Shown: in pieces, positions 6,959 through 21,414 of the stretch | Layout of the letters: each line of letters opens with the position of its first letter | How positions within the stretch are numbered: the stretch's first letter is position 1 | Origin: Macrostomum hystrix | Taxonomy: Eukaryota > Animalia > Platyhelminthes | Assembly: GCA_950097015.1 (NCBI GenBank) | Contig: CATNEN010000002.1 | Coordinates: 1,240,001-1,304,000 of the forward strand | DNA length: 64,000 nucleotides | Reading direction: 5' to 3' | The notes under the pieces: generated by a model | The model's database searches: none | Told to the model about the DNA's origin: nothing | Seen by the model: the letters and a program-made list of their open reading frames with translations, nothing else | Translations under genes and position numbers: made by a program

Positions 6959-6966
6959 AGCTGATT

Positions 6967-8340
6967 ACTGACGTAAACCTAGCCTCATGCCATCCTCACG
7001 ATATTTGAAAACAACGTGCGATGGCTGCGATACTGCCTAAAATTAGCAGATACGATGAAGACAGATATGCAATGCCTGTTTTTGCATCGATATATGCCAT
7101 GGTCGTGCGTGTGAATGGCTCTAAAATATGAAAGCATGAGGATGGCGTGAGGATGGCGTGAGGATGGCTTCCCAAAGATGCACATATCAACTAATTCGTG
7201 CGATGATTTCTAAATCCTACATAGGCACGTGCCAGTAATAACTGTGTGAAATTTCAAATCAAGGCATCAAATTCTTTGCCTTTTAGGCACGTCGGAGAAA
7301 CTAAATCGGCTGAAGTATGTGGTGTCTTGCTGCGATAAAAGAACGTATTATAGGGTACATTGCGAAAGCACACATATCGCATAGCTACTCTCCTAAACTA
7401 CAAAAATTCGAAAACCGCAACTTTGCGATGGCCCTAGTTGCTGAGATCGACGTCATTATACATGAACATAAAATGTCACAAATTTCTCCCCGGCGTTATC
7501 AAAATTATTCCAAGCAAACTAACAAAACATTTGCCGCTGGAGACAACAATGTCGACAAAAACTAAAGTCTAACTTAGAGTTAAAACCAAAATTAACATTA
7601 AAGATATTCGATTATATCCGAGAAGACTGCACTCAGTCTGTTGTTAGTTATTGCATCAGTTACTTCTCCCACTTTGAATGTAAGCAAGACTTGTGCAAGG
7701 ACCACTCTTCTTCTAGTGGTCCTTGTACTTATGACCTAGTGTACTGAATAGTGTACTTGGACACTCATAAAGAACAAAGATTAGGCCTATACAAGCAATG
7801 TAAACAAGTCATTGACTCATTGGTTGGCAACACTGTGCATTTTTTACCTCATTCTCAGTGCAGTAGTGTCAATTATTGGTGTGTATCAGTGCAAGCTCAT
7901 TTATTGCTTACCTACATTACAATCCTACATAATTAATTATATTGAGCATCTACTTGCCATTCATTTCAATTGGTTCTTTCCATTGGCATTATTATACATT
8001 ATAATTGAGTTCCTCATTTTTGTACATTTATATACATGGAATCAAACAAATGGTTGACAAGTCCCATGAAATTTATAATGCCATGCAGTCGCAGATAAAG
8101 AAGAAAAAAGTATTTTACGTTTCTTGGAACATCAAATAAGGCTGATAAGATGAGATAGATGATAAGATAATATAGACTAATATTAATAATATTAATTTTC
8201 TATCTTGTCTTTAATCAACTCATTAAACTCTAACTAACTTACTTAATATGAAATTCTTGACATCGTTCCTTCATGTTCCATACATTCTTATCTTTATTTT
8301 TGTGTTGAAAATAGGTCAGTTGTTACTATTTGTCTTTGTC
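6967..8340 (+). repeat. Left outer terminal inverted repeat (1374 bp)
   Basis: Reverse complement of 18941-20314. Five short ORFs translate identically in both arms. Contains 11-bp GTGAGGATGGC repeats near 7137-7168. Confidence 0.95.
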
Positions 8341-10615
8341 TAGACTAAACATCCATGGTCCATAAAGAACATGAAATTCTTGTTCCTTCATGTTCCGTCT
8401 ATTCTTGTCTATATATTTGTGTTGAAAGTAGAGCACCAATTGTTATCTGTCTAGACTAAACATCCATGGTCCATAAAGAACATGAAATTCTTGTTCCTTC
8501 ATGTTCCGTCTATTCTTGTCTATATATTTGTGTTGAAAGTAGAGCACCAATTGTTATCTGTCTAGACTAAACATCCATGGTCCAAAAAGAACATGAAATT
8601 CTTGTTCCTTCATGTTCCGTCTATTCTTGTCTATATATTTGCGTTGAAAGTAGAGCACCAATTGTTATCTGTCTAGACTAAACATCCATGGTCCATAAAG
8701 AACATGAAATTCTTGTTCCTTCATGTTCCGTCTATTCTTGTCTATATATTTGTGTTGAAAGTAGAGCACCAATTGTTATCTGTCTAGACTAAACATCCAT
8801 GGTCCATAAAGAACATGAAATTCTTGTTCCTTCATGTTCCGTCTATTCTTGTCTATATATTTGTGTTGAAAGTAGAGCACCAATTGTTATCTGTCTAGAC
8901 TAAACATCCATGGTCCATAAAGAACATGAAATTCTTGTTCCTTCATGTTCCGTCTATTCTTGTCTATATATTTGTGTTGAAAGTAGAGCACCAATTGTTA
9001 TCTGTCTAGACTAAACATCCATGGTCCAAAAAGAACATGAAATTCTTGTTCCTTCATGTTCCGTCTATTCTTGTCTATATATTTGTGTTGAAAGTAGAGC
9101 ACCAATTGTTATCTGTCTAGACTAAACATTCATGGTCCATAAAGAACATGAAATTCTTGTTCCTTCATGTTCCGTCTATTCTTGTCTATATATTTGTGTT
9201 GAAAGTAGAGCACCAATTGTTATCTGTCTAGACTAAACATCCATGGTCCAAAAAGAACATGAAATTCTTGTTCCTTCATGTTCCGTCTATTCTTGTCTAT
9301 ATATTTGTGTTGAAAGTAGAGCACCAATTGTTATCTGTCTAGACTAAACATTCATGGTCCATAAAGAACATGAAATTCTTGTTCCTTCATGTTCCGTCTA
9401 TTCTTGTCTATATATTTGTGTTGAAAGTAGAGCACCAATTGTTATCTGTCTAGACTAAACATCCATGGTCCAAAAAGAACATGAAATTCTTGTTCCTTCA
9501 TGTTCCGTCTATTCTTGTCTATATATTTGTGTTGAAAGTAGAGCACCAATTGTTATCTGTCTAGACTAAACATTCATGGTCCATAAAGAACATGAAATTC
9601 TTGTTCCTTCATGTTCCGTCTATTCTTGTCTATATATTTGTGTTGAAAGTAGAGCACCAATTGTTATCTGTCTAGACTAAACATCCATGGTCCATAAAGA
9701 ACATGAAATTCTTGTTCCTTCATGTTCCGTCTATTCTTGTCTATATATTTGTGTTGAAAGTAGAGCACCAATTGTTATCTGTCTAGACTAAACATCCATG
9801 GTCCAAAAAGAACATGAAATTCTTGTTCCTTCATGTTCCGTCTATTCTTGTCTATATATTTGTGTTGAAAGTAGAGCACCAATTGTTATCTGTCTAGACT
9901 AAACATTCATGGTCCATAAAGAACATGAAATTCTTGTTCCTTCATGTTCCGTCTATTCTTGTCTATATATTTGCGTTGAAAGTAGAGCACCAATTGTTAT
10001 CTGTCTAGACTAAACATCCATGGTCCAAAAAGAACATGAAATTCTTGTTCCTTCATGTTCCGTCTATTCTTGTCTATATATTTGCGTTGAAAGTAGAGCA
10101 CCAATTGTTATCTGTCTAGACTAAACATCCATGGTCCATAAAGAACACGAAATTCTTGTTCCTTCATGTTCCGTCTATTCTTGTCTATATATTTGCGTTG
10201 AAAGTAGAGCACCAATTGTTATCTGTCTAGACTAAACATCCATGGTCCATAAAGAACATGAAATTCTTGTTCCTTCATGTTCCGTCTATTCTTGTCTATA
10301 TATTTGCGTTGAAAGTAGAGCACCAATTGTTATCTGTCTAGACTAAACATTCATGGTCCATAAAGAACATGAAATTCTTGTTCCTTCATGTTCCGTCTAT
10401 TCTTGTCTATATATTTGTGTTGAAAGTAGAGCACCAATTGTTATCTGTCTAGACTAAACATCCATGGTCCATAAAGAACATGAAATTCTTGTTCCTTCAT
10501 GTTCCGTCTATTCTTGTCTATATATTTGTGTTGAAAGTAGAGCACCAATTGTTATCTGTCTAGACTAAACATCCATGGTCCATAAAGAACACGAAATTCT
10601 TGTTCCTTCATGTTC
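8341..10615 (+). repeat. 111-bp tandem array in left TIR, about 20.5 units
   Basis: TAGACTAAAC recurs at 8341, 8452, 8563 ... 10561 (period 111); few variant positions. Confidence 0.97.
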
Positions 10616-10731
10616 AGTCATTATTATAGTGGTACATCTATGTATCTATATGTTCAAGCTATGCACATGAGACGTGTCACTTTCATTTCAGATTTTGTGG
10701 GCTTGACTGGCAATTATTAGCAGACTTTCTA

Positions 10732-13700
10732 ATGAGTAAGTTTTTTTGCCCTGTTGTCTTTTCTGATTGCTTCAGACTTTGTGCAACACTCATGCAGACG
10801 TTGCATATGACTCCTTTTTTTCATGGTACAGACTATTTAAGTGACTTGCCATGTTAATTTCAGATTGGAATACCGTCTCCGTCGATGACATTCAGAACCT
10901 GTTTGCCTCTCGTCGTCTGAGTTACTCAGATGTTGCTACCAAGCCTCTGCCAGGACCCACACCTGTAGGGACAGTGTGGTCCAGGGCATGCATTCTGTTG
11001 GGCTTTGAGGACTCATTCATTCACCGACGCTGGCTGTATGACCAGTTTCGCAGGAACGCAGTAAAGATTTTAACAGATATATCAGACGATCCTGTCCACG
11101 ATGAAGTCCTAGACAAAGAAAGCGCCAATGAGGAGTAAGTATTTTGCTGGATTTTTAGATCAACTTTTGCAGTGTCATGCATGAATCCTGTTTACAATGG
11201 TCTTTAGTCAGGGCTCTTTTGAAACATCATGACCCTAACTTCATCGCATGTATACAAATAAGAGTCATTTCTTTGCAGTGAGCAGCCGATTTTTCATGCG
11301 AGACTGCACACGGCGATCATCCTAGATAGCAGCGGACGTCTGCAAAAGAACTGGCAGGACTTCATCTTTCCGCACTTCTCGACTATGCTCTCCTGTTGCT
11401 TATGCGTGCAGCGAAGCAGGGTGGCAGCTACCTCGGCAGAGGTGACGGCAGATGTCTACTGCCGGGTCACCTCCTGCAACGCTCGCTTCAGGCTAACATC
11501 ACAGGATAGTAGGTTGCTGTGGACTCTGAGGGCGAGCGGCCCCCTTAAACCGCACACTGTGAAGCCACGCCCACTGAGAGGTCATCGCCGAGAAGAGTTG
11601 GCCCAGCGAGTCAACTCCTCTAACGCATACTCTGTGTCTGCAGAGCTGGCTACGGATGGCATTACACCGGAAGTACCGACCTCTAGCGTGCTGCGAACTG
11701 CGGCATCTCAGGAGCGGTTGAAAGAAAGGTTTTCCCAGGATCAAATCATGGATATCCTAATGAACGGGGAAATGCTCGATCCCCCGTTCATCAGAGATGT
11801 GAACGTACGACCAGGTGTTGGCCACCCGCGCTTTGCCCTGCTCTATATGGACAAAGCAATTCGGCTTCTAAAAGTGCTTCACTGTCGCAATTTACCGATT
11901 CGTGTCGGTCTGGACTCAACTGGTGCGCCCCTGGCCGATGGACACGGTGCTTACTTGCATGCCCTGGCTCTGCATCATCCAATTGAAGGGGAAGCTCCAG
12001 TGCCAATTATGCTGCTTCTGTCCAACTCGCAGACTAAGTCCACTATAAAGTTTGCATTGGACACATTCATCACAGCAGCACGGAAATCCGTTGCTAGCCT
12101 AACAATGCTTCAAGCTGTCACTGACTTCAACATCCCCAGCCTGGCTGCACTTACCTATGCCCACCATGGAATGGACATTCTTCCATATTTACGACTCTGC
12201 TGCGCCGTGCTCCGTCGGTCCTTCTCACAGCGTGAGCTTCGGGGATTCTGCCTCGTGGGACTTGGCAGGAGCCATATTGTGCACGAGTTTACGAGCTGGA
12301 CAATAGTGACCTCATGGCAGGACAAAAGAGCCTCGTGCTATTGGAAGCACGTCTTTGGTGCGCTTGTACGCACAACGTGCCTCGCCAGAGCTAAAATGGT
12401 AGTTACAGCATTCTTTGGTCTGCTCCTTGCACCAACTCTGGAGGTTCTAGAACTTCCAATGGAGGAGCTCACATTGGGTGGCCAGAATGTGGCTGCAAAG
12501 CAGCTGCTGGACGCCGCCATTGCCGACGAACTGGATGATGTGGAGGAATTTATTCCTGCGGAGGAACTGCTCTACGCTAGACCCGACAATACAATCAAGA
12601 GGGCATCTCCATTTTGGCAGATCTTTCAAAATGTTCACCAACAACTGGAGAATCGATTTTCAGCCAACCTGGACGAGGAAGATTTCCGCGCTGTTCCGAA
12701 TCCATTCCGCTGTACTCCGTTGGCACGCAAGCTCCTTGACGTCATGTTGCCGTACCTGCCGCTCTTTACGAGCATAATGTCTGAGCCTTGGCGTTACGCC
12801 CGGGAAGAAATGTATGCTGCAACCCCTGAGTCGTTGCACAGCTTCCAGGAGGGCAGTACTGAACTCTGCATTCGCCTCATTAAGGGCAGCCTCCTTGATG
12901 ACCAGCGGCCAAGTGCCATGACTTTTGTTAGGACAATGCACAGAAAGCTGCCAGGAGTGTACCACCAGTTCCTGCGACCATTGGGAGTCTTTTTGCAACA
13001 GGAAGGCGTTCGCAGCGGCACCTCCGATTGCTCGGATAGTGAAGCAAATTCCTCCAACGAGCATCCAACTCATTTTATGCAGAATGATACAATGCCACGT
13101 ACTACCCCAGGGGCGTCTGTTCTTACTAACGAAAATTCTGTGCCCGGCTCCGTATCTGCCTCATCTGCTTCTGGACCCTCTGTGCCAGGCTCCGCATCTG
13201 CCTCTGGACCCTCTGTGCCAGGCTCCGCATCTGCCTCTGGACCCTCTGTGCCAGGCTCCGCATCTGCCTCATCTGCCTCTGTGCCAGGCTCCGCATCTGC
13301 CTCATCTGCCTCTGGACCCTCTGTGTTAGGCTCCGCATCTGCCTCATCTGCCTCTGGACCCTCTGTGCCAGGCTCCGCATCTGACTCTGGACCCTCTGTG
13401 CCAGGCTCCGCATCTGCCTCTGGACCCTCTGTGCCAGGCTCCGCATCTGCCTCATCTGCCTCTGTGCCAGGCTCCGCATCTGCCTCATCTGCCTCTGGAC
13501 CCTCTGTGCCAGGCTCCGCATCTGCCTCTGGACCCTCTGTGCCTGTTGGAAATTCCGTTCGTCCAAGCCAACGTTCAGCCGAGAATCCGTTCACAGCGAT
13601 GGAGTTCGAGGAGAATCTGACAGAGGAAGGAACACATTTTGCTGGTATCGTAAACAAGAAGCGCAAGCGTCCATCAGCCACCTACACTTCGCCGAAGCGA

Positions 13701-14841
13701 ACCGCTATCTTTGCCCAGTCATCCAGAGAAGTGCAGTTTGCAATGCTGAGGAACTACTCGACTTCTCGTAACGTGCCTTACGGCAACGATGTTTTAACAG
13801 TTCATGTCTCGAATGCTTGTACAGTTGACCATTTGCTGACAGCTTTGACGTTTGCAATGCGAGACCATTCCGAGTTTCGGCAGGCAGTCCAGCGACTTCC
13901 CGATGATTGCGCTCCCCTGACTGACTTTCTGCATGCAGCTGTCCAGGCTTTTACTCATGAGAGTATCCATTTCGCTCGGGCTCGGCTGCTCCTGCGTTGT
14001 CCTGAATTGCACCGGCGTGGCGCTGTCGTGAGGCGCCGGTCCAGCACTTCCAAGGAAATCGATATAAGCCTATTCCAGGGAGCGCTGGATGTTACTACCT
14101 GGGTGCTCGGAGAGTTTCATGCTATAACTCAGCGTGTGGGTTGCCCCTTCTGCCGCAAAGAGGAGACACGGCGCTTCTACCAACTTGTGCTTCCAACTCC
14201 GGAGCAAGCGCCCTCTGGTGACAGCCGCCGGATCTTAATGTCTCCCGAGGCCTATCTTCGGGAAGTATTTACTTCTGGCGACCGCTGTGTGGAATGCCTC
14301 GACTGTAACCTCGACTCGCGCTACTTACACCATCCCCGCTTTGCCAACTTTCCACCGCCAGTTGTGGTTGTGGGCATTCCAGATTCGGCAACGGGTCGGG
14401 AGACTCTCCCACCTCACTCAGTCATGCATCCTTTCCCGGAGGACGGATCCATTCAGTAAGTGCACACTGGTTCAATGCGCCGTTTGTGATTCTTACATAT
14501 TCAGGCTAGCTAATTTCAGCATGTGTTGGGCATCGTTAATAAAAAACTTGACTTCGTTAACAAAAAATTTAACGGTTTAACTAGTTAATGACTAGTATCT
14601 TGGGTGCAAGCTTCGAATGTATGGAATTTTATTCACTAATTTTAGTTACAATCTCTGTTGCACAACAATTGCTGTGCCCGGTCATTTCTACGGCCGCATC
14701 GTTCGTGGAAACACCCATTACATCTACGATGACGCAGCATCTAGTGCTCAAGGCAAACTGCCATTTTATAAGGAGGGTCGGCAGCGGAACCGTGGCAGAC
14801 CGACTCTTTTAGTCTACATCGTCGGAACGTGCCGTTGCTGA
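10732..14841 (+). CDS. MULE (NOF-FB-like) DDE transposase with C-terminal USP/C19-like protease domain, about 1215 aa
   Basis: Exons 10732-10735, 10864-11134, 11279-14455 and 14646-14841 have GTAAG...AG introns with matching phases (3648 nt). Putative catalytic D in GLDSTG (11913), D in VTDFN (12123) and E in GSTELCIRLIK (12861). N-terminal W..F...C...C motif. C-terminal NACTVDH, two CxxC pairs, GHF and YDD. Confidence 0.85.
13135..13545 (+). repeat. In-frame minisatellite encoding SVPGSASASGP-type repeats inside the transposase
   Basis: Repeated ctctgtgccaggctccgcatctgcctc units; reading frame preserved. Confidence 0.9.
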
Positions 14842-16600
14842 TGGTCTATGCCTCAAGGACATGGTGTTAAATTTTCTGCTTGTAGTTTGCAGTAGTTTAG
14901 GGCAACAGAATATTTCATGTTACGAGTATATAGTACCAACCATTTTTGTGTGGGGTGATGTGTAGAGCGACAGAGCGCACAAATGCACGACGAGAAGAGT
15001 TGGCAAATGATTGCAGATATTATTTTGTTTGTCGCCAATTTTCAGATCTCGACGATCTGCAGATTTTTAGGTCTCTTTCAAATTTTTGCCAATTGTAGTC
15101 AGTTGCCAATAGCAATAATAATACTATGGGCTTGTTCTTGACCTTGCACTCGAGTATTTGGGCATTTTAAAGTCATTGTTTTTATGTTTGATTCATGCAT
15201 CAGGATATATACTGCTGATAGTGTTTTTTTCCGCATGGGTGTCACATGGCAAAAACGCACTGAGGAAGTGTTGCCCGCTTTTTGAACATGATAATGAGAA
15301 TATTTTGTCCATGTTGTTTTTCGTCACAGAGCCAATTGATGATGGATGATATGGATGATAAAGAAATTTGTTGTAAATATCCAATCCCTCTCAAATAGTG
15401 TAGAAATTAACAATGGAGAAATAACGGATCACCTCTTCTTCCCTACCCTGCATCTACTCCCTTCTTGCAGATGCGACGCTTTTAAGATCTTAGTGTACTC
15501 GTTTCTAACCTAGCCGGCGTTCTCCAATTCCTAATATAGTACCGTCCTATACCGTAAAAACACCGTAAATAGTCCTTCAACTTGTTCTCTTTTGATGTGG
15601 TCTGCTTATGTTAACCCAGCTATCCAATTCTTATAACTCTAGCTAACGTTGCATTTCTACATTTGTAGCACATTCGCACCCTGATATGCTCATTTGTGCT
15701 GCTCCTCATACTAACGCATTTGCAGTGTTTATGTCGTTGTCGAAATGGCAATGTATGTCTTCTACGCTTCTATACTTTTATGTGGGCAATGGCGCCCAGC
15801 CCAGCAGACAGCAGAATTGAGCGTTTATGTACTTTTTGGTCGCGCAATTCGTTGTTTTCATTTTGCCCTTTTAGTATACTCAAAATAATATACTTCTTAT
15901 TCTCGCTTTCAGTTTACTCATGAACGAGTTTCGTTTTAATTTTTGTGTGCTACATGTACAGTTTCGGAGGGTTAAAGTTTTCTATTTTGTGCGACGAGCT
16001 GCATTTTGTCCAGTTAAAGCTGGTTCAAAATAAGAAAAAAATTAAAATTCATATTTCCCTTTAAAGGCTTTTGCCGAACTGAAAAGTTGCAAGACCAACT
16101 TGCAGAATACGCGTTATAACAGCAGACTTTTTATGCCATGCGATGAAAAAAGTTGTAGTCTTCTTGCCATGCAGCATAAGTAACAGATTACGATAGAAAA
16201 AATTAAAATGCATTTCCATAGAAGACAGAATTGCAAGCGTACTAAGAGGTGACGTCAATTGCAGTTATAGATTCTCGTATTAGCTGTGGTCCTTCGACAT
16301 TACTACAGACAGCAAACATCTTAATATTAGAAAACGACAATGTCAACCAGCAAATTTGTCGACAGCACACACAAAAAACATTCCATTTACTCTCTCGGGC
16401 ACCAGATGTAAAACTTACTCGCTCGCTTATTCGCCAATAAGGATGATTATTGCTTAGCAGTCTTGTCTGCAAAGCAATAATCATCCTTATTGGCGACGTG
16501 CTCAAGTAGTTCTGCGCATAGCGATTGCTGCTCAAAACTGTTCCGCCGAATACCAAAAAGCGGTAAAGGAGAAAATAATAGCACACCCAAGAGCATTAAT

Positions 16601-17809
16601 TTACATCTGGACCATTCTTCTGGTAAAATAAGTCTTACGACCTGTCCCACCAGTAATATCACTCAGATCAGCCTTCCTCTTTCGTCGCTTCTTCTTTTCA
16701 TCTCCATCTCTCTCCTTTGCCGCCGCCGCCTGCTCTCGCTCTTCCACCGCCTCTCGCTCCCTCGCCGCCGCCGCCTCTCGCTCCCTCGCCGCCGCCGCCT
16801 GCTCTCGCTCTTCCACCGCCTCTCGCTCCCTCGCCGCCGCCGCCTCTCGCCGCTCCCTCGCCGCCGCCGCCTGCTCTCGCTCTTTCGCCGCCTCTCGCTC
16901 CCTCGCCGCCGCCGCCTGCTCTCGCTCTTTCGCCGCCTCTCGCTCCCTCGCCGCCACCTGCTCTCGCTCTTTCGCCGACTCTCGCTCTCTCGCCGCCGCC
17001 GCCTGCTCTTGCTCTTCCGCCGCCTCTCGCTCCCTAGCCGCCGCCGCCTGCTCTCGCTCTTTCGCCGACTCTCGCTCTCTCGCCGCCGCCGCCTGCTCTC
17101 GCTCTTCCGCCGCCTCTCGCTCCCTAGCCGCCGCCGCCTGCTCTCGCTCTTTCGCCGCCTCTCGCTCCCTCGCCGCCACCTGCTCTCGCTCTTCCACCGC
17201 CTCTCGCTCCCTCGCTGCCGCCGCCTTTCGTTCTCCCGCTGTCGCTGGCATGTCCACACTCCCAACTGCTGCAGCTACACGAACTTCGGCTTGCAACTGC
17301 CGAATGCAGGCGATAGAAATGTTCAATACAGAAATTAATTCCACTGGCGAAAACGATGCGGCCAATTCGAGATGCCTCAACGCCTCTGATATGTGCTCCG
17401 CAACAGACGGGCGACACATTTCCTTGTCCACAACCTTCCATCCATTGCTTTCGAGCCACACCTTACCCGCTTCTGCAGCCTTGCACCGCTTTGAAAAATC
17501 CTGACGGCAATCAGCTTCCATACTTCGAGTGCGAAAGATAGCTATACCATTACTGTATGCAAGTGCATTACCATCTTCAGTCAGGTATTGAAATGAAGTA
17601 CCTTTCACAGTTCGAATTTTGCTATTAGCAAATTTTATGCCAAGGATACTAGCAGCACCACGGACACAGGCAGCAGACAGTTCAATGCCGACAACAATAT
17701 CTTTCGGAATGAAATCCGGCAATGGCCCGTTGGGCTCAAATTTGTAATATGGGTCCTTGATGAAGGCCTGGAAAAATTGAAAACTTAGCATATAGTTCAT
17801 GTTCTTCAT
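16601..17809 (-). CDS. Second, convergent gene of the MULE element: unknown protein with Ala/Arg/Glu coiled-coil repeat and basic NLS-like stretch (probably spliced)
   Basis: 402-aa ORF starts in the degenerate innermost unit of the right array. ttttccag acceptor at 17768-17770 and a GTAAAT donor near 16604. AAAREREAAKEREQ repeats, then KKKRRKRK. Confidence 0.6.
   Translation of the reverse strand: MKNMNYMLSFQFFQAFIKDPYYKFEPNGPLPDFIPKDIVVGIELSAACVRGAASILGIKFANSKIRTVKGTSFQYLTEDGNALAYSNGIAIFRTRSMEADCRQDFSKRCKAAEAGKVWLESNGWKVVDKEMCRPSVAEHISEALRHLELAASFSPVELISVLNISIACIRQLQAEVRVAAAVGSVDMPATAGERKAAAAREREAVEEREQVAAREREAAKEREQAAAAREREAAEEREQAAAARERESAKEREQAAAAREREAAEEQEQAAAARERESAKEREQVAAREREAAKEREQAAAAREREAAKEREQAAAARERREAAAAREREAVEEREQAAAAREREAAAAREREAVEEREQAAAAKERDGDEKKKRRKRKADLSDITGGTGRKTYFTRRMVQM
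16720..17220 (-). repeat. In-frame GC-rich minisatellite (AAAREREAxxEREQ)
   Basis: Repeated cgccgccgcctgctctcgctc / cgcctctcgctccct units on the plus strand. Confidence 0.9.
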
Positions 17810-17820
17810 AGAAAATATAT

Positions 17821-18940
17821 GTTTAGTCTAGACAGATAACAATTGGTGTTCTACTTTCAACACAAATATTTAGACAAGAATGGGTGGAACATGAAGGAAC
17901 AAGACTTTCATGTTCTTTATGGACCATGGATGTTTAGTCTAGACAGATAACAATTGGTGCTCTACTTTCAACGCAAATATATAGACAAGAATAGACGGAA
18001 CATGAAGGAACAAGAATTTCATGTTCTTTATGGACCATGGATGTTTAGTCTAGACAGATAACAATTGGTGCTCTACTTTCAACGCAAATATATAGACAAG
18101 AATAGACGGAACATGAAGGAACAAGAGTTTCATGTTCTTTATGGACCATGGATGTTTAGTCTAGACAGATAACAATTGGTGCTCTACTTTCAACACAAAT
18201 ATTTAGACAAGAATGGGTGGAACATGAAGGAACAAGACTTTCATGTTCTTTATGGACCATGGATGTTTAGTCTAGACAGATAACAATTGGTGCTCTACTT
18301 TCAACGCAAATATATAGACAAGAATAGACGGAACATGAAGGAACAAGAATTTCATGTTCTTTATGGACCATGGATGTTTAGTCTAGACAGATAACAATTG
18401 GTGCTCTACTTTCAACACAAATATATAGACAAGAATAGACGGAACATGAAGGAACAAGAATTTCATGTTCTTTATGGACCATGGATGTTTAGTCTAGACA
18501 GATAACAATTGGTGCTCTACTTTCAACGCAAATATATAGACAAGAATAGACGGAACATGAAGGAACAAGAATTTCATGTTCTTTATGGACCATGAATGTT
18601 TAGTCTAGACAGATAACAATTGGTGCTCTACTTTCAACGCAAATATATAGACAAGAATAGACGGAACATGAAGGAACAAGAATTTCATGTTCTTTTTGGA
18701 CCATGGATGTTTAGTCTAGACAGATAACAATTGGTGCTCTACTTTCAACACAAATATATAGACAAGAATAGACGGAACATGAAGGAACAAGAATTTCATG
18801 TTCTTTATGGACCATGGATGTTTAGTCTAGACAGATAACAATTGGTGCTCTACTTTCAACACAAATATATAGACAAGAATAGACGGAACATGAAGGAACA
18901 AGAATTTCATGTTCTTTATGGACCATGGATGTTTAGTCTA
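17821..18940 (-). repeat. 111-bp tandem array in right TIR, 10 units, inverted relative to the left array
   Basis: GTTTAGTCTA at 17821 ... 18931 (period 111); reverse complement of the left-array unit. Confidence 0.97.
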
Positions 18941-20314
18941 GACAAAGACAAATAGTAACAACTGACCTATTTTCAACACAAAAATAAAGATAAGAATGTA
19001 TGGAACATGAAGGAACGATGTCAAGAATTTCATATTAAGTAAGTTAGTTAGAGTTTAATGAGTTGATTAAAGACAAGATAGAAAATTAATATTATTAATA
19101 TTAGTCTATATTATCTTATCATCTATCTCATCTTATCAGCCTTATTTGATGTTCCAAGAAACGTAAAATACTTTTTTCTTCTTTATCTGCGACTGCATGG
19201 CATTATAAATTTCATGGGACTTGTCAACCATTTGTTTGATTCCATGTATATAAATGTACAAAAATGAGGAACTCAATTATAATGTATAATAATGCCAATG
19301 GAAAGAACCAATTGAAATGAATGGCAAGTAGATGCTCAATATAATTAATTATGTAGGATTGTAATGTAGGTAAGCAATAAATGAGCTTGCACTGATACAC
19401 ACCAATAATTGACACTACTGCACTGAGAATGAGGTAAAAAATGCACAGTGTTGCCAACCAATGAGTCAATGACTTGTTTACATTGCTTGTATAGGCCTAA
19501 TCTTTGTTCTTTATGAGTGTCCAAGTACACTATTCAGTACACTAGGTCATAAGTACAAGGACCACTAGAAGAAGAGTGGTCCTTGCACAAGTCTTGCTTA
19601 CATTCAAAGTGGGAGAAGTAACTGATGCAATAACTAACAACAGACTGAGTGCAGTCTTCTCGGATATAATCGAATATCTTTAATGTTAATTTTGGTTTTA
19701 ACTCTAAGTTAGACTTTAGTTTTTGTCGACATTGTTGTCTCCAGCGGCAAATGTTTTGTTAGTTTGCTTGGAATAATTTTGATAACGCCGGGGAGAAATT
19801 TGTGACATTTTATGTTCATGTATAATGACGTCGATCTCAGCAACTAGGGCCATCGCAAAGTTGCGGTTTTCGAATTTTTGTAGTTTAGGAGAGTAGCTAT
19901 GCGATATGTGTGCTTTCGCAATGTACCCTATAATACGTTCTTTTATCGCAGCAAGACACCACATACTTCAGCCGATTTAGTTTCTCCGACGTGCCTAAAA
20001 GGCAAAGAATTTGATGCCTTGATTTGAAATTTCACACAGTTATTACTGGCACGTGCCTATGTAGGATTTAGAAATCATCGCACGAATTAGTTGATATGTG
20101 CATCTTTGGGAAGCCATCCTCACGCCATCCTCACGCCATCCTCATGCTTTCATATTTTAGAGCCATTCACACGCACGACCATGGCATATATCGATGCAAA
20201 AACAGGCATTGCATATCTGTCTTCATCGTATCTGCTAATTTTAGGCAGTATCGCAGCCATCGCACGTTGTTTTCAAATATCGTGAGGATGGCATGAGGCT
20301 AGGTTTACGTCAGT
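18941..20314 (-). repeat. Right outer terminal inverted repeat (1374 bp)
   Basis: Reverse complement of 6967-8340. Confidence 0.95.
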
Positions 20315-20322
20315 AGCTGATT

Positions 20323-21414
20323 CGCATCAATGCCAATCCGATCCTTTGTTCTGTGACAGATCCTTAAACATGGCAAAGCACCTTCTATTTGTTGGGTGAT
20401 TTGCAACAACCAGTGCAAATACAGAACCACCATGCCTGTTCACCTGCTCGACGCAGTTACTATAATGCTTTGCTTTAGAAATTCTGCTTTGAGCAGATAA
20501 ATAGGAATAAGCCGTAGAATGATGGGCTTGCCCCCCATCAATGGTTTCAGCATTATATGGCTAGAATGGTGCTGCCTTTGCTGGGCTGTCCTCTGCGTAA
20601 CCGAACAAATTTTTGCACCTAAACCTGACTGACGGTTGGACGTACATCTCGTCAAATAATACTACGCATTTTAGCTGAGGTCCACGTAACGTTGTAAAAA
20701 CTGTCCGAATGGTCTCTTCGGAGTCCGCGTGTGTTCCAACTTCTCCAAGTCCAGCCAAACGTGTTCGCAGTGTCCGCTGATGGGGCAGAGGTAGCAGATT
20801 ACGAAAATTAAGCTGCGAATACGCCGAACTACTTATCAGGTAAATTAGAGCAGACTGTCTTCTAGATGTGGCCTCTTCTTCAATTCTAGTTGTGGCCTCT
20901 GCTTCGATTCTAGTTGTGGCCTCTGCTACTATTCTAGTTGTGGCCTCTGCTACTATTCTAGTTGTGGCCTCTGCTACTATTCTAGTTGTGGCCTCTGCTA
21001 CTATTCTAGTTGTGGCCTCTGCTACTATTCTAGTTGTGGCCTCTGCTACTATATTCTAGTTGTGGCCTCTGCTACTATTCTAGTTGTGGCCTCTGCTACT
21101 ATTCTAGTTGTGGCCTCTGCTACTATTCTAGTTGTGGCCTCTGCTACTATTCTAGTTGTGGCCTCTGCTACTATTCTAGTTGTGGCCTCTGCTACTATTC
21201 TAGTTGTGGCCTCTGCTACTATTCTAGTTGTGGCCTCTGCTACTATTCTAGTTGTGGCCTCTGCTACTATTCTAGTTATGGCCTCTGCTACTATTCTTTG
21301 GTTTGGTTTCCTATCATTCTCCTCAAGCCGCAAGTGGATTGAAGAAACTGAGCAATGTTTTTTCTCAAACTTTTTTCTGTTGCTCAGTTTTTTTCTGATT
21401 GAGCTGTCAGACAT
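20323..21414 (-). pseudogene. 5' part of the decayed P-element/THAP9-like transposase
   Basis: Reverse strand gives SALIYLISSSAYSQLNFRNLLPLPHQRTLR, KCVVLFDEMYVQPSVRF..LFGYAED, MLKPLMGGKPIILRLIPI and GGSVFALVVANHPTN across several frameshifts. Confidence 0.8.
20883..21297. repeat. 24-bp minisatellite, about 17 units (EATTRIVA on the minus strand)
   Basis: attctagttgtggcctctgctact repeated. In frame with the P-type transposase N-terminus except for a 2-nt insertion near 21051. Confidence 0.9.

Follow-up and report, generated by a model that had tools for sequence, protein, structure and literature searches.

A young foldback transposon, probably of the Mutator superfamily, with a USP-like transposase tail in the flatworm Macrostomum hystrix

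The window, a 64,000-nucleotide stretch of Macrostomum hystrix contig CATNEN010000002.1, holds a 13,348-bp element at positions 6967-20314, in which two long inverted arms enclose a predicted transposase gene and a second, convergent gene. Its features are as follows (window coordinates):

6959-6966, no strand: left target-site duplication, AGCTGATT
6967-8336, plus strand: left outer unique arm, terminus ACTGACGTAAACC
8337-10619, plus strand: left array, 20.6 units of 111 bp, 98% matches
10732-10735, plus strand: putative exon 1 (ATG and one base), next to a GTAAGT donor
10864-11134, plus strand: exon 2, N-terminal helical region, matching residues 5-72 of the homologue P0073 (E 5e-5)
11279-14455, plus strand: exon 3, with the predicted zinc finger, the DDE core and the start of the USP-like domain
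about 11385-11561, plus strand: predicted WRKY-type zinc finger (exon 3)
about 11780-13005, plus strand: predicted DDE core, with D at 11913, D at 12123, a conserved His at 12273 and E at 12861
13137-13543, plus strand: 33-bp coding repeat (exon 3)
13656, plus strand: KKRKR nuclear-localisation-like motif (exon 3)
from about 13728, plus strand: first part of the USP-like domain, Cys codon of the Cys box at 13818
14646-14841, plus strand: exon 4, end of the USP-like domain, stop codon TGA at 14839-14841
14683, plus strand: His codon of the His box GHFYG (exon 4)
14728-14733, plus strand: YDD (exon 4)
14842-16600, no strand: AT-rich spacer between the convergent genes, without a long open frame
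16601-17809, minus strand: second gene, 402 aa, start codon at the inner edge of the right array
17796-18944, minus strand: right array, 10.4 units of 111 bp, 96% matches
18945-20314, minus strand: right outer unique arm, identical to the left outer arm
20315-20322, no strand: right target-site duplication, AGCTGATT

Positions 6966-9485 and 17796-20315 form an inverted repeat of 2,520 nt with 99% complementarity. In a base-by-base comparison from the termini inwards, the two arms matched without exception for 1,719 bp, and 29 mismatches fell within the first 2,520 bp. The first-pass annotation, which had described identical outer arms of 1,374 bp, was correct on their identity and understated their length. 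Its estimate of about 3.6 and 2.5 kb for the inverted repeats, including the 111-bp arrays, agrees with whole arm lengths of 3,653 bp on the left (6967-10619) and 2,519 bp on the right (17796-20314). The 8-bp duplication that it saw at both ends is likewise present, with the copies of AGCTGATT directly abutting the termini ACTGACGTAAACC...GGTTTACGTCAGT.

In the left outer arm the motif GCCATCCTCA occurs singly at 6989 and, inverted, in three copies at 7137-7168; the inner end of this arm is a degenerate array unit. Every 111-bp unit contains the palindrome GAACATGAA-N11-TTCATGTTC, with the half-site AACATGA. As single-stranded DNA, one unit folds with a z of -0.67, which is not unusual; the palindrome is better read as a candidate binding site in duplex DNA.

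Searching the 220-Mb assembly for further copies and derivatives, as the first-pass annotation had proposed, revealed two more large copies and two MITE-like derivatives. The large copies are:

C34:2151327-2165568, 14,242 bp: full-length copy, 8-bp duplication GGACCATC
C38:12883522-12892395, 8,874 bp: copy with an internal deletion, 8-bp duplication ATTGAATT

Each has its own flanks and its own 8-bp duplication. Their outer arms differ from those of the window copy at 0-2 of 1,364 positions (99.85-100% identity), in line with the young age first ascribed to the element. The number of array units varies between ends and copies (20/10, 13/21 and 13/4). The copy on C38 lacks the equivalent of window 11547-14708, that is, the transposase region, and the copy on C34 has lost 1 bp in an A4 run at the equivalent of window 12324, leaving a broken frame with parts of 379 and 762 aa. 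Among the three copies in the genome, the transposase frame is therefore open in the window copy only. The MITE-like derivatives (224 and 165 bp, the former with an identity of 99-100%) share the termini of the element and are flanked by 9-bp duplications. Target duplications thus measure 8-9 bp at five independent insertion sites, 8 bp at the three large copies and 9 bp at the two MITE-like ones. At one large copy the duplication is strictly 8 bp; at the other two, either 8 or 9 bp fits, since the T before the left duplication is also the last base of the element. Old, scattered remnants are present in the genome as well. One of them, on contig C5, provides the sole hint of a role in promoting rearrangements.

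The four-exon transposase model was derived by hand from GT/AG signals and reading frame, with exon 1 placed on the same grounds. The predicted spliced frame of 3,648 nt (1,215 codons) contains no stop or frameshift, as originally described, and every exon matches a 1,106-aa protein of Macrostomum lignano in the same order. The predicted N-terminus reads M-N-W, compared with M-N-F in the homologue P0073. Seventy-one relatives were found among 1.84 billion representative proteins, the best being 40% identical and again from Macrostomum lignano; the lineage includes flatworm, mollusc, echinoderm and many metagenomic relatives. In ORF numbering the putative catalytic residues are D177, D247 and E493. 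Both aspartates and His297 are conserved across 45 relatives, and E493 sits in the motif T-E-L-x-x-x-x-I-K.

The protein has diverged beyond the reach of the Pfam MULE model. None of the exons or pieces of the window gene matched Pfam up to an E of 10, and a whole-genome search with PF10551 returned 55 canonical MULE matches, none of them at this element. Among 72 relatives, MULE models matched five (E 0.002-0.011, below the curated cut-off and always over the D1-D2 stretch), PHD models seven and UCH models five (best 2.6e-9). The neighbours of the transposase in a protein language model are all MULE clusters. NCBIfam searches of 37 relatives for IS256 models gave only noise, and two family profiles found no match among PDB sequences. 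A word-based protein search with the transposase core, the second gene and the family alignment also gave no matches, to which we attach little weight.

We modelled exon 3 alone (pLDDT above 90 in the core), so that the USP-like domain lacked its His-box exon, exon 4, and matched the models to known structures with VIA-align. In these models a zinc finger of the WRKY type precedes a DDE core of RNase-H fold, into which an all-helical domain is inserted, and a USP-like tail follows. The core is matched best by ISCth4 of the IS256 family, with 252 residues aligned at a Z of 10.8, ahead of the P element (Z 10.3) and Hermes (Z 9.7). The zinc finger superimposes on AtWRKY1 with a Z of 7.7 (59 of 61 residues, rmsd 2.3), and the tail matches USP14 with a Z of 5.6. 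Modelling the homologue P0073 gave a similar picture, with Z values of 11.6 for ISCth4, 6.5 for WRKY33 (77 of 79 residues), 6.4 for USP9X, 6.1 for USP1, 6.0 for USP16 and 5.6 for USP7. The sequence of the tail contains a Cys box, NACTVD (Cys812), paired cysteines and, in exon 4, GHF...YDD; at least 12 relatives keep these features, in the forms NTC-x-x-D and SGHY...YDG. The predicted C-terminal domain thereby shows the Cys box, zinc-ribbon fingers, His box with a following Asp and papain-like fold of USPs (peptidase C19), although its Z scores are middling and its His-box half is poorly modelled.

In the second protein, the N-terminal 180 aa or so are conserved; a variable repeat (45-bp coding repeat at 16707-17226, AAAREREAxEEREQ) and the basic stretch KKKRRKRK follow. 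The protein found no usable match in the language-model atlas, and no similarity to mudrB was detected. Our guess is that it could serve as a nuclear coiled-coil helper.

A diverged sister family in the same genome shares this layout:

C11:3132676-3144295: sister-family copy
C2:6487513-6498734: sister-family copy

The sister transposase is 41% identical to that of the window. Its homologues of the second gene are 47-48% identical and lie in the equivalent position, convergent with the transposase gene. The arms of the sister family measure 2.3-2.4 kb, are 99.5% alike, carry arrays of 89-bp units and end in ACTGAC. No clean target duplications were seen for this family, and its C2 copy is short by 7 bp at one end. 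Aligning the cores of the 111-bp and 89-bp arrays yielded a score of 31, against 16.7 ± 2.5 for shuffled sequences; 1 of 2,000 shuffles reached 31. Between the two families the terminal ACTGAC, the palindromic array core, the USP-like tail and the second gene with its convergent orientation are conserved, whereas unit length, unit number and the remaining arm sequence are free to change.

MULEs carry a zinc finger of the WRKY/GCM1 (FLYWCH-like) type, and IS256 is a bacterial family regarded as kin of the eukaryotic MULEs. Transposases of the Mutator superfamily combine a DDE RNase-H core with an inserted helical domain and a C/DxxH motif, a pattern that the predicted core follows. Taken together, we interpret window 6967-20314 as an autonomous-looking, low-copy and very young cut-and-paste transposon of the Mutator superfamily (MULE/IS256-type DDE), built on the foldback design of Rehavkus; we put the probability of this reading at roughly 85%. 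The assignment to Mutator draws on the predicted fold (an IS256-type DDE core with a WRKY zinc finger), the weak MULE matches in relatives and the 8-9-bp duplications, and it bears out the initial call of a foldback-type MULE with long, array-bearing inverted arms. MULE target duplications span 8-11 bp (PMC6446971).

Since the structures of IS256, P element and hAT transposases score within about 1-2 Z units of one another, the fold by itself does not decide between these superfamilies. Duplications of P elements measure 8 bp, as seen at the large copies, and the P element is the second-best structural match (Z 10.3 and 10.7), statistically tied with the best. Moreover, Galileo sets a precedent for foldback arms outside the MULEs (PMC3688188, PMC3573991), which makes a Galileo-like element, with a P-type transposase between long repetitive inverted arms, worth considering. 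We nevertheless regard such an origin as very unlikely: the N-terminal DNA-binding domain is predicted to fold as a WRKY-type zinc finger and not as a THAP domain, P-element and THAP Pfam models match neither the window protein nor its 72 relatives, five of which match MULE models, the language-model neighbours are all MULE clusters and the top structure belongs to the IS256 family. Still less probable is an element of the hAT superfamily. Hermes reaches a Z of 9.7, and hAT elements also make 8-bp duplications, as found at the three large copies; however, the rmsd to Hermes is worse (6.5-7.4), the MITE-like copies carry 9-bp duplications, and Pfam detects neither a BED finger nor a hAT dimerisation domain in the protein and its 72 relatives. 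Kilobase arms are not known as a hAT trait. We therefore reject both assignments.

Long-read assembly is known to fail by producing perfect inverted repeats of kilobase size, and the arms could in principle reflect a fold-back artefact or a segmental duplication instead of a mobile element. Three copies on three contigs with distinct flanks and their own exact 8-bp duplications, a varying number of array units, one internal deletion, MITE-like derivatives with the same termini and a diverged sister family of the same layout render this explanation almost untenable, and we reject it. A far more serious alternative is that the family is real and now inactive, the intact frame of the window copy merely reflecting its youth and the copies being recent relics. 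There are only three large copies, one frameshifted and one deleted, next to old scattered remnants, and we consider inactivity a realistic, if less probable, state. Against it stand the 99.85-100% identity of the arms between copies, the 99-100% identity of the 224-bp derivative and a window copy that keeps the full frame, the catalytic residues and both genes. We infer activity only from copy identity and intact frames. On this basis, we regard the element as a new, probably active family of the known foldback, Rehavkus-like Mutator kind.

How might such an element move? The transposase would bind sites in the arms via its zinc finger, pair both ends, excise the element and insert it into a staggered cut of 8-9 bp. 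The 111-bp arrays would multiply a palindromic candidate site (half-site AACATGA), the core of which the 89-bp array of the sister family retains, and should thereby raise the occupancy of the ends by transposase or an accessory protein. Promoters probably lie in the arrays or at their inner edges as well, given that each gene begins no more than about 110 bp from an array and points inwards, like the genes of MuDR. The USP-like tail might, at a guess, remove ubiquitin from the transposase or from chromatin. A bolder and rather doubtful proposal is that this lineage of foldback Mutator-like elements is defined by a helper gene that is conserved and by a three-part transposase of WRKY finger, DDE core and active deubiquitinase of the USP type; the arm arrays would then be multimerised binding sites for one such protein. 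If so, deubiquitination would serve transposition or evasion of host control, and the intact source, the deletion derivative and the MITE-like copies would constitute a ready-made active two-component system in a regenerating flatworm.

Irrespective of that proposal, the locus offers a clean, fully bounded example of a foldback Mutator-type build. A copy that seems competent shares the genome with a naturally arisen non-autonomous derivative and with MITE-like copies, and the sister family separates conserved from variable parts. If active, the element is a potential endogenous insertion tool for flatworms and a case in which to ask why some transposases come with a ubiquitin protease.

As a design, long inverted ends that grow tandem arrays are already known in beetles and flies. 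The first-pass annotation pointed to the tandem arrays of FB-NOF and Phantom MULEs; the closest described design is Rehavkus and not Phantom. Rehavkus (Repbase; Tribolium, Hydra and annelids), known here by its description, is treated either as a deep branch of the Mutator superfamily or as its sister. It shares with our element long inverted ends with subterminal tandem repeats, one large transposase and a deep divergence from canonical MULEs. It has a PHD finger and a minisatellite (PMC6446971), and a PHD finger occurs in 7 of the 72 relatives of our transposase; unlike Rehavkus, the window protein has none in any exon according to Pfam, and of the large copies one has a strictly 8-bp duplication and two allow 8 or 9 bp, against 9 bp in Rehavkus and in the MITE-like copies. 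The literature covered makes no mention of a USP-like tail or a conserved second gene in Rehavkus. No named beetle, Hydra or fly protein was among the relatives looked up.

FB-NOF and the nematode element Tm1 resemble our element in their composite inverted ends of tandem repeats, whose unit number varies between ends and copies, in their MITE-like derivatives and in a Mutator-type transposase. Tm1 duplications measure 8-10 bp (PMC3169594). Whereas the repeats of Tm1 and FB are short (about 14 bp, or 10-31 bp), the unit here measures 111 bp and is preceded by a unique terminus of 1.37 kb. Tm1 encodes a Phantom-like transposase that has a FLYWCH finger and a MULE domain recognised by Pfam, whereas the window transposase escapes Pfam. 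ISCth4 and the IS256 family match the core with Z values of 10.8-11.6 over about 240-250 residues, yet at 6% sequence identity, and lack the WRKY finger, the USP domain and the long arms.

Other transposons also encode proteases, such as Ulp1 (C48) in plant KI-MULEs and OTU and VTD deubiquitinases in Helitrons (PMC9741609). The likeness lies in a mobile-element-encoded thiol protease of the ubiquitin or ubiquitin-like system; the domain described here differs in its predicted USP (C19) fold and in its fusion to the C-terminus of a DDE transposase, a combination for which our literature search found no description. The general architecture is also reminiscent of maize MuDR, with two convergent genes read from opposite ends, long inverted ends that probably contain binding sites and promoters, and deletion derivatives, which in MuDR are moved in trans. 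Unlike in MuDR, the arms are ten times longer and bear arrays, and the USP-like tail takes the place of a SWIM or CCHC finger.

The element (window 6967-20314, 13,348 bp) is bounded by the termini ACTGACGTAAACC...GGTTTACGTCAGT, and AGCTGATT flanks them at 6959-6966 and 20315-20322, in agreement with the 8-bp duplication at both ends claimed by the first-pass annotation. A repeat search returned inverted-repeat arms at 6966-9485 and 17796-20315 (2,520 nt, 99%). An exact comparison of the element with its reverse complement, starting at the two ends, gave no mismatch in the first 1,719 bp and 29 in the first 2,520; the outer arms that looked identical in the sequence are confirmed as such. Both arms run inwards into arrays of 111-bp units, whose bounds give arm lengths of 3,653 bp (left) and 2,519 bp (right), matching the earlier estimate of about 3.6 and 2.5 kb. 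The internal features are as follows.

8337-10619: left 111-bp array, 20.6 units (Tandem Repeats Finder)
10732-10735, 10864-11134, 11279-14455 and 14646-14841: exons 1-4 of the transposase gene, 3,648 nt, open throughout
17809-16604, minus strand: open reading frame of the second gene, 402 aa, intact in all three full copies
17796-18944: right 111-bp array, mirror of the left, 10.4 units (Tandem Repeats Finder)

The window corresponds to C2:1240001-1304000 in an assembly of 220 Mb and 42 contigs. Searching this assembly with the outer arm revealed two further full copies, on contigs C34 and C38. The genome-wide search for copies and non-autonomous derivatives proposed in the first-pass annotation thus yielded both, including derivatives of 224, 165 and about 90 bp that share the element termini.

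C34:2151327-2165568, opposite orientation: full copy, 14,242 bp, duplication GGACCATC
C38:12883522-12892395: full copy, 8,874 bp, duplication ATTGAATT
C39: small derivative, 224 bp, 99-100% identical, duplication AGTTGACAT
C34: small derivative, 165 bp, about 90% identical, duplication TGCAGGTGC
C5: small derivative, about 90 bp

An assembly artefact is ruled out by the two additional full copies, each with its own duplication, and by the small derivatives with element termini. The six outer arms of the three copies show 0-2 differences per 1,364 positions; two copies have identical paired arms, and in the third a single site separates them. The arrays vary in unit number from copy to copy (20/10, 13/21 and 13/4); the 111-bp unit is confined to these six arms and never forms a free-standing satellite. 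Target duplications measure 9 bp at the small copies; at the full copies they are 8 bp, strictly so in one and with 9 bp as an alternative reading in the other two.

Several further observations concern the ends and their surroundings. The motif GCCATCCTCA occurs once per terminus and in three inverted tandem copies about 140 bp inward (6989-7168 and 20113-20292), an arrangement that gives a small hairpin inside each element end; the junction of the 224-bp derivative lies exactly at this motif. Outside the element, 540 bp downstream, a 24-bp unit is repeated 18 times with 97% matches (window 20860-21297). On contig C5 (loci L042-L044), an old solo terminus (C5:5065929-5066662, 96.7% identical) lies 13 kb from an inverted internal fragment without arms (C5:5079355-5082598), which spans the 3' portion of the transposase along with the second gene. 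Together these may be a rearranged remnant.

The exons of the transposase gene were called from GT/AG signals and reading frame, and protein searches and fold models were run on single exons, each taken separately. Compared with P0073, a 1,106-aa Macrostomum lignano protein, all exons fall in the right order. Exon 2 corresponds to residues 5-72, the stretch of exon 3 that precedes its first ATG to residues 110-203 and exon 4 to residues 1050-1103, with 40% identity over 541 residues in the core and 29% over 335 residues in the C-terminal domain. The four-exon transposase without stop or frameshift described earlier is borne out by this colinearity and by the 3,648 nt of open frame. Among the three full copies, only the window copy has an open transposase frame. 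The C38 copy lacks the equivalent of window 11547-14708, and so has lost the transposase, and keeps the second gene; in the C34 copy, the A4 run at window-equivalent 12324 is one base short and the frame is split, although this deletion could be an assembly error. The gene also contains a 33-bp in-frame coding minisatellite (SASGPSVPG-type, 13137-13543), whose unit number varies across the three copies.

The transposase protein had no match in Pfam or in a word-based protein search, and HMMER against 1.84 billion representatives recovered only 71 relatives, the best 40% identical. Named sources are Macrostomum lignano, Mytilus coruscus, Holothuria leucospilota and a metagenome bin labelled Sedimenticola. 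Among 72 relatives, Pfam detected PHD in seven, UCH in five (best 2.6e-9) and MULE in five, the last at E 0.002-0.011, below the cut-off, and always between the first two catalytic aspartates; none matched the P-element, THAP, hAT or BED models. Alignments revealed two near-invariant aspartates, a histidine that is invariant and lies within a C-x-x-H-type motif, and the motif T...VE.W....K (D177, D247, H297 and E493 in window ORF numbering). Protein-language-model neighbours were MULE clusters.

We aligned the predicted model of window exon 3, with core pLDDT mostly >90, to 48,161 PDB representatives. ISCth4 of the IS256 family ranked first (Z 10.8, 252 residues aligned), followed by the P element transposase (Z 10.3) and Hermes (Z 9.7); residues 1-59 matched AtWRKY1 (Z 7.7, 59 of 61 aligned, rmsd 2.3) and residues 782-913 matched USP14 (Z 5.6). 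The complete P0073 model gave Z values of 11.6 for ISCth4, 10.7 for the P element, 9.7 for Hermes and 6.5 for WRKY33, with five USP-type catalytic domains at 5.3-6.4. The top Foldseek ranks were RAG1, P element, Transib, ISCth4 and Hermes. Since the core Z values barely separate the three transposase families, five features taken together carry the superfamily call: the first rank of an IS256-type core, a WRKY-type finger, weak MULE matches, the lack of P and hAT domains, and duplications of 8-9 bp, within the 8-11 bp span of MULEs (PMC6446971). The element probably belongs to the Mutator (MULE) superfamily.

At the C-terminus, a USP-like domain is found in at least 12 relatives. Its Cys box is conserved as NTC-x-x-D (NACTVD in the window) and SGHY...YDG appears in exon 4 as GHF...YDD; the tail also keeps paired cysteines, a PP-x-hydrophobic strand and a final hydrophobic-Tyr motif. 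The domain is likely a USP fold, as predicted from a model with a poorly modelled His-box half and middling structural Z. We found no published description of a DDE transposase that carries a USP-type domain; Helitrons are known to carry deubiquitinases belonging to other classes (PMC9741609).

The second gene had no match in Pfam, a word-based search or a language-model atlas, yet it is conserved, with homologues in the sister family described below. It contains a 45-bp in-frame coding minisatellite (AAAREREAxEEREQ-type, 16707-17226), again varying in unit number across the three copies. The start of each gene lies no more than about 110 bp from the inner edge of an array, and both genes are read inwards; this suggests that promoters may lie within the arrays or at their edges, as in MuDR.

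A sister family in the same genome (C11:3132676-3144295 and C2:6487513-6498734; loci L034-L041) encodes a transposase 41% identical to that of the window and, convergent to it, second-gene homologues at 47-48% identity. Its arms measure 2.3-2.4 kb (99.5%), its arrays consist of 89-bp units and its termini begin ACTGAC. This family lacks clean target duplications, and 7 bp are missing at one end of the C2 copy. More distant paralogues, 29-33% identical with open frames of 713-776 aa, occur at C11:4471801, C1:15660933, C1:23303280, C38:31551494 and elsewhere. By sequence, several lineages of this transposase group exist side by side in M. hystrix. Similarity between the 111-bp and 89-bp units is confined to a core of some 40 bp surrounding a palindrome (window 8337-10619 versus L035:4361-5487), GAACATGAA-N11-TTCATGTTC in the former and AAACATGA-N4-TCATGTTT in the latter, with the common half-site AACATGA. 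The local alignment score of 31, against 16.7 +/- 2.5 for shuffles, was reached by 1 of 2,000 shuffles. This points to a conserved candidate site for protein binding, multiplied in the arrays. Such a reading fits a report, cited in bioRxiv 10.1101/2024.12.02.626372, according to which a larger number of subterminal repeats strengthens transposase binding and excision.

The element is real, very young and represents a new family of an already known foldback design; from its sequence, the family is probably still mobile. Among foldback MULEs, Tm1 and FB have short repeats (PMC3169594). Rehavkus, with a PHD finger, a minisatellite and 9-bp duplications (PMC6446971), shares the element's design of long inverted ends with subterminal tandem repeats. 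However, by comparison with the published description, the window transposase lacks the PHD finger, and this absence, together with duplications at the full copies that read as 8 bp (in two of them also as 9), would count against membership of Rehavkus proper.
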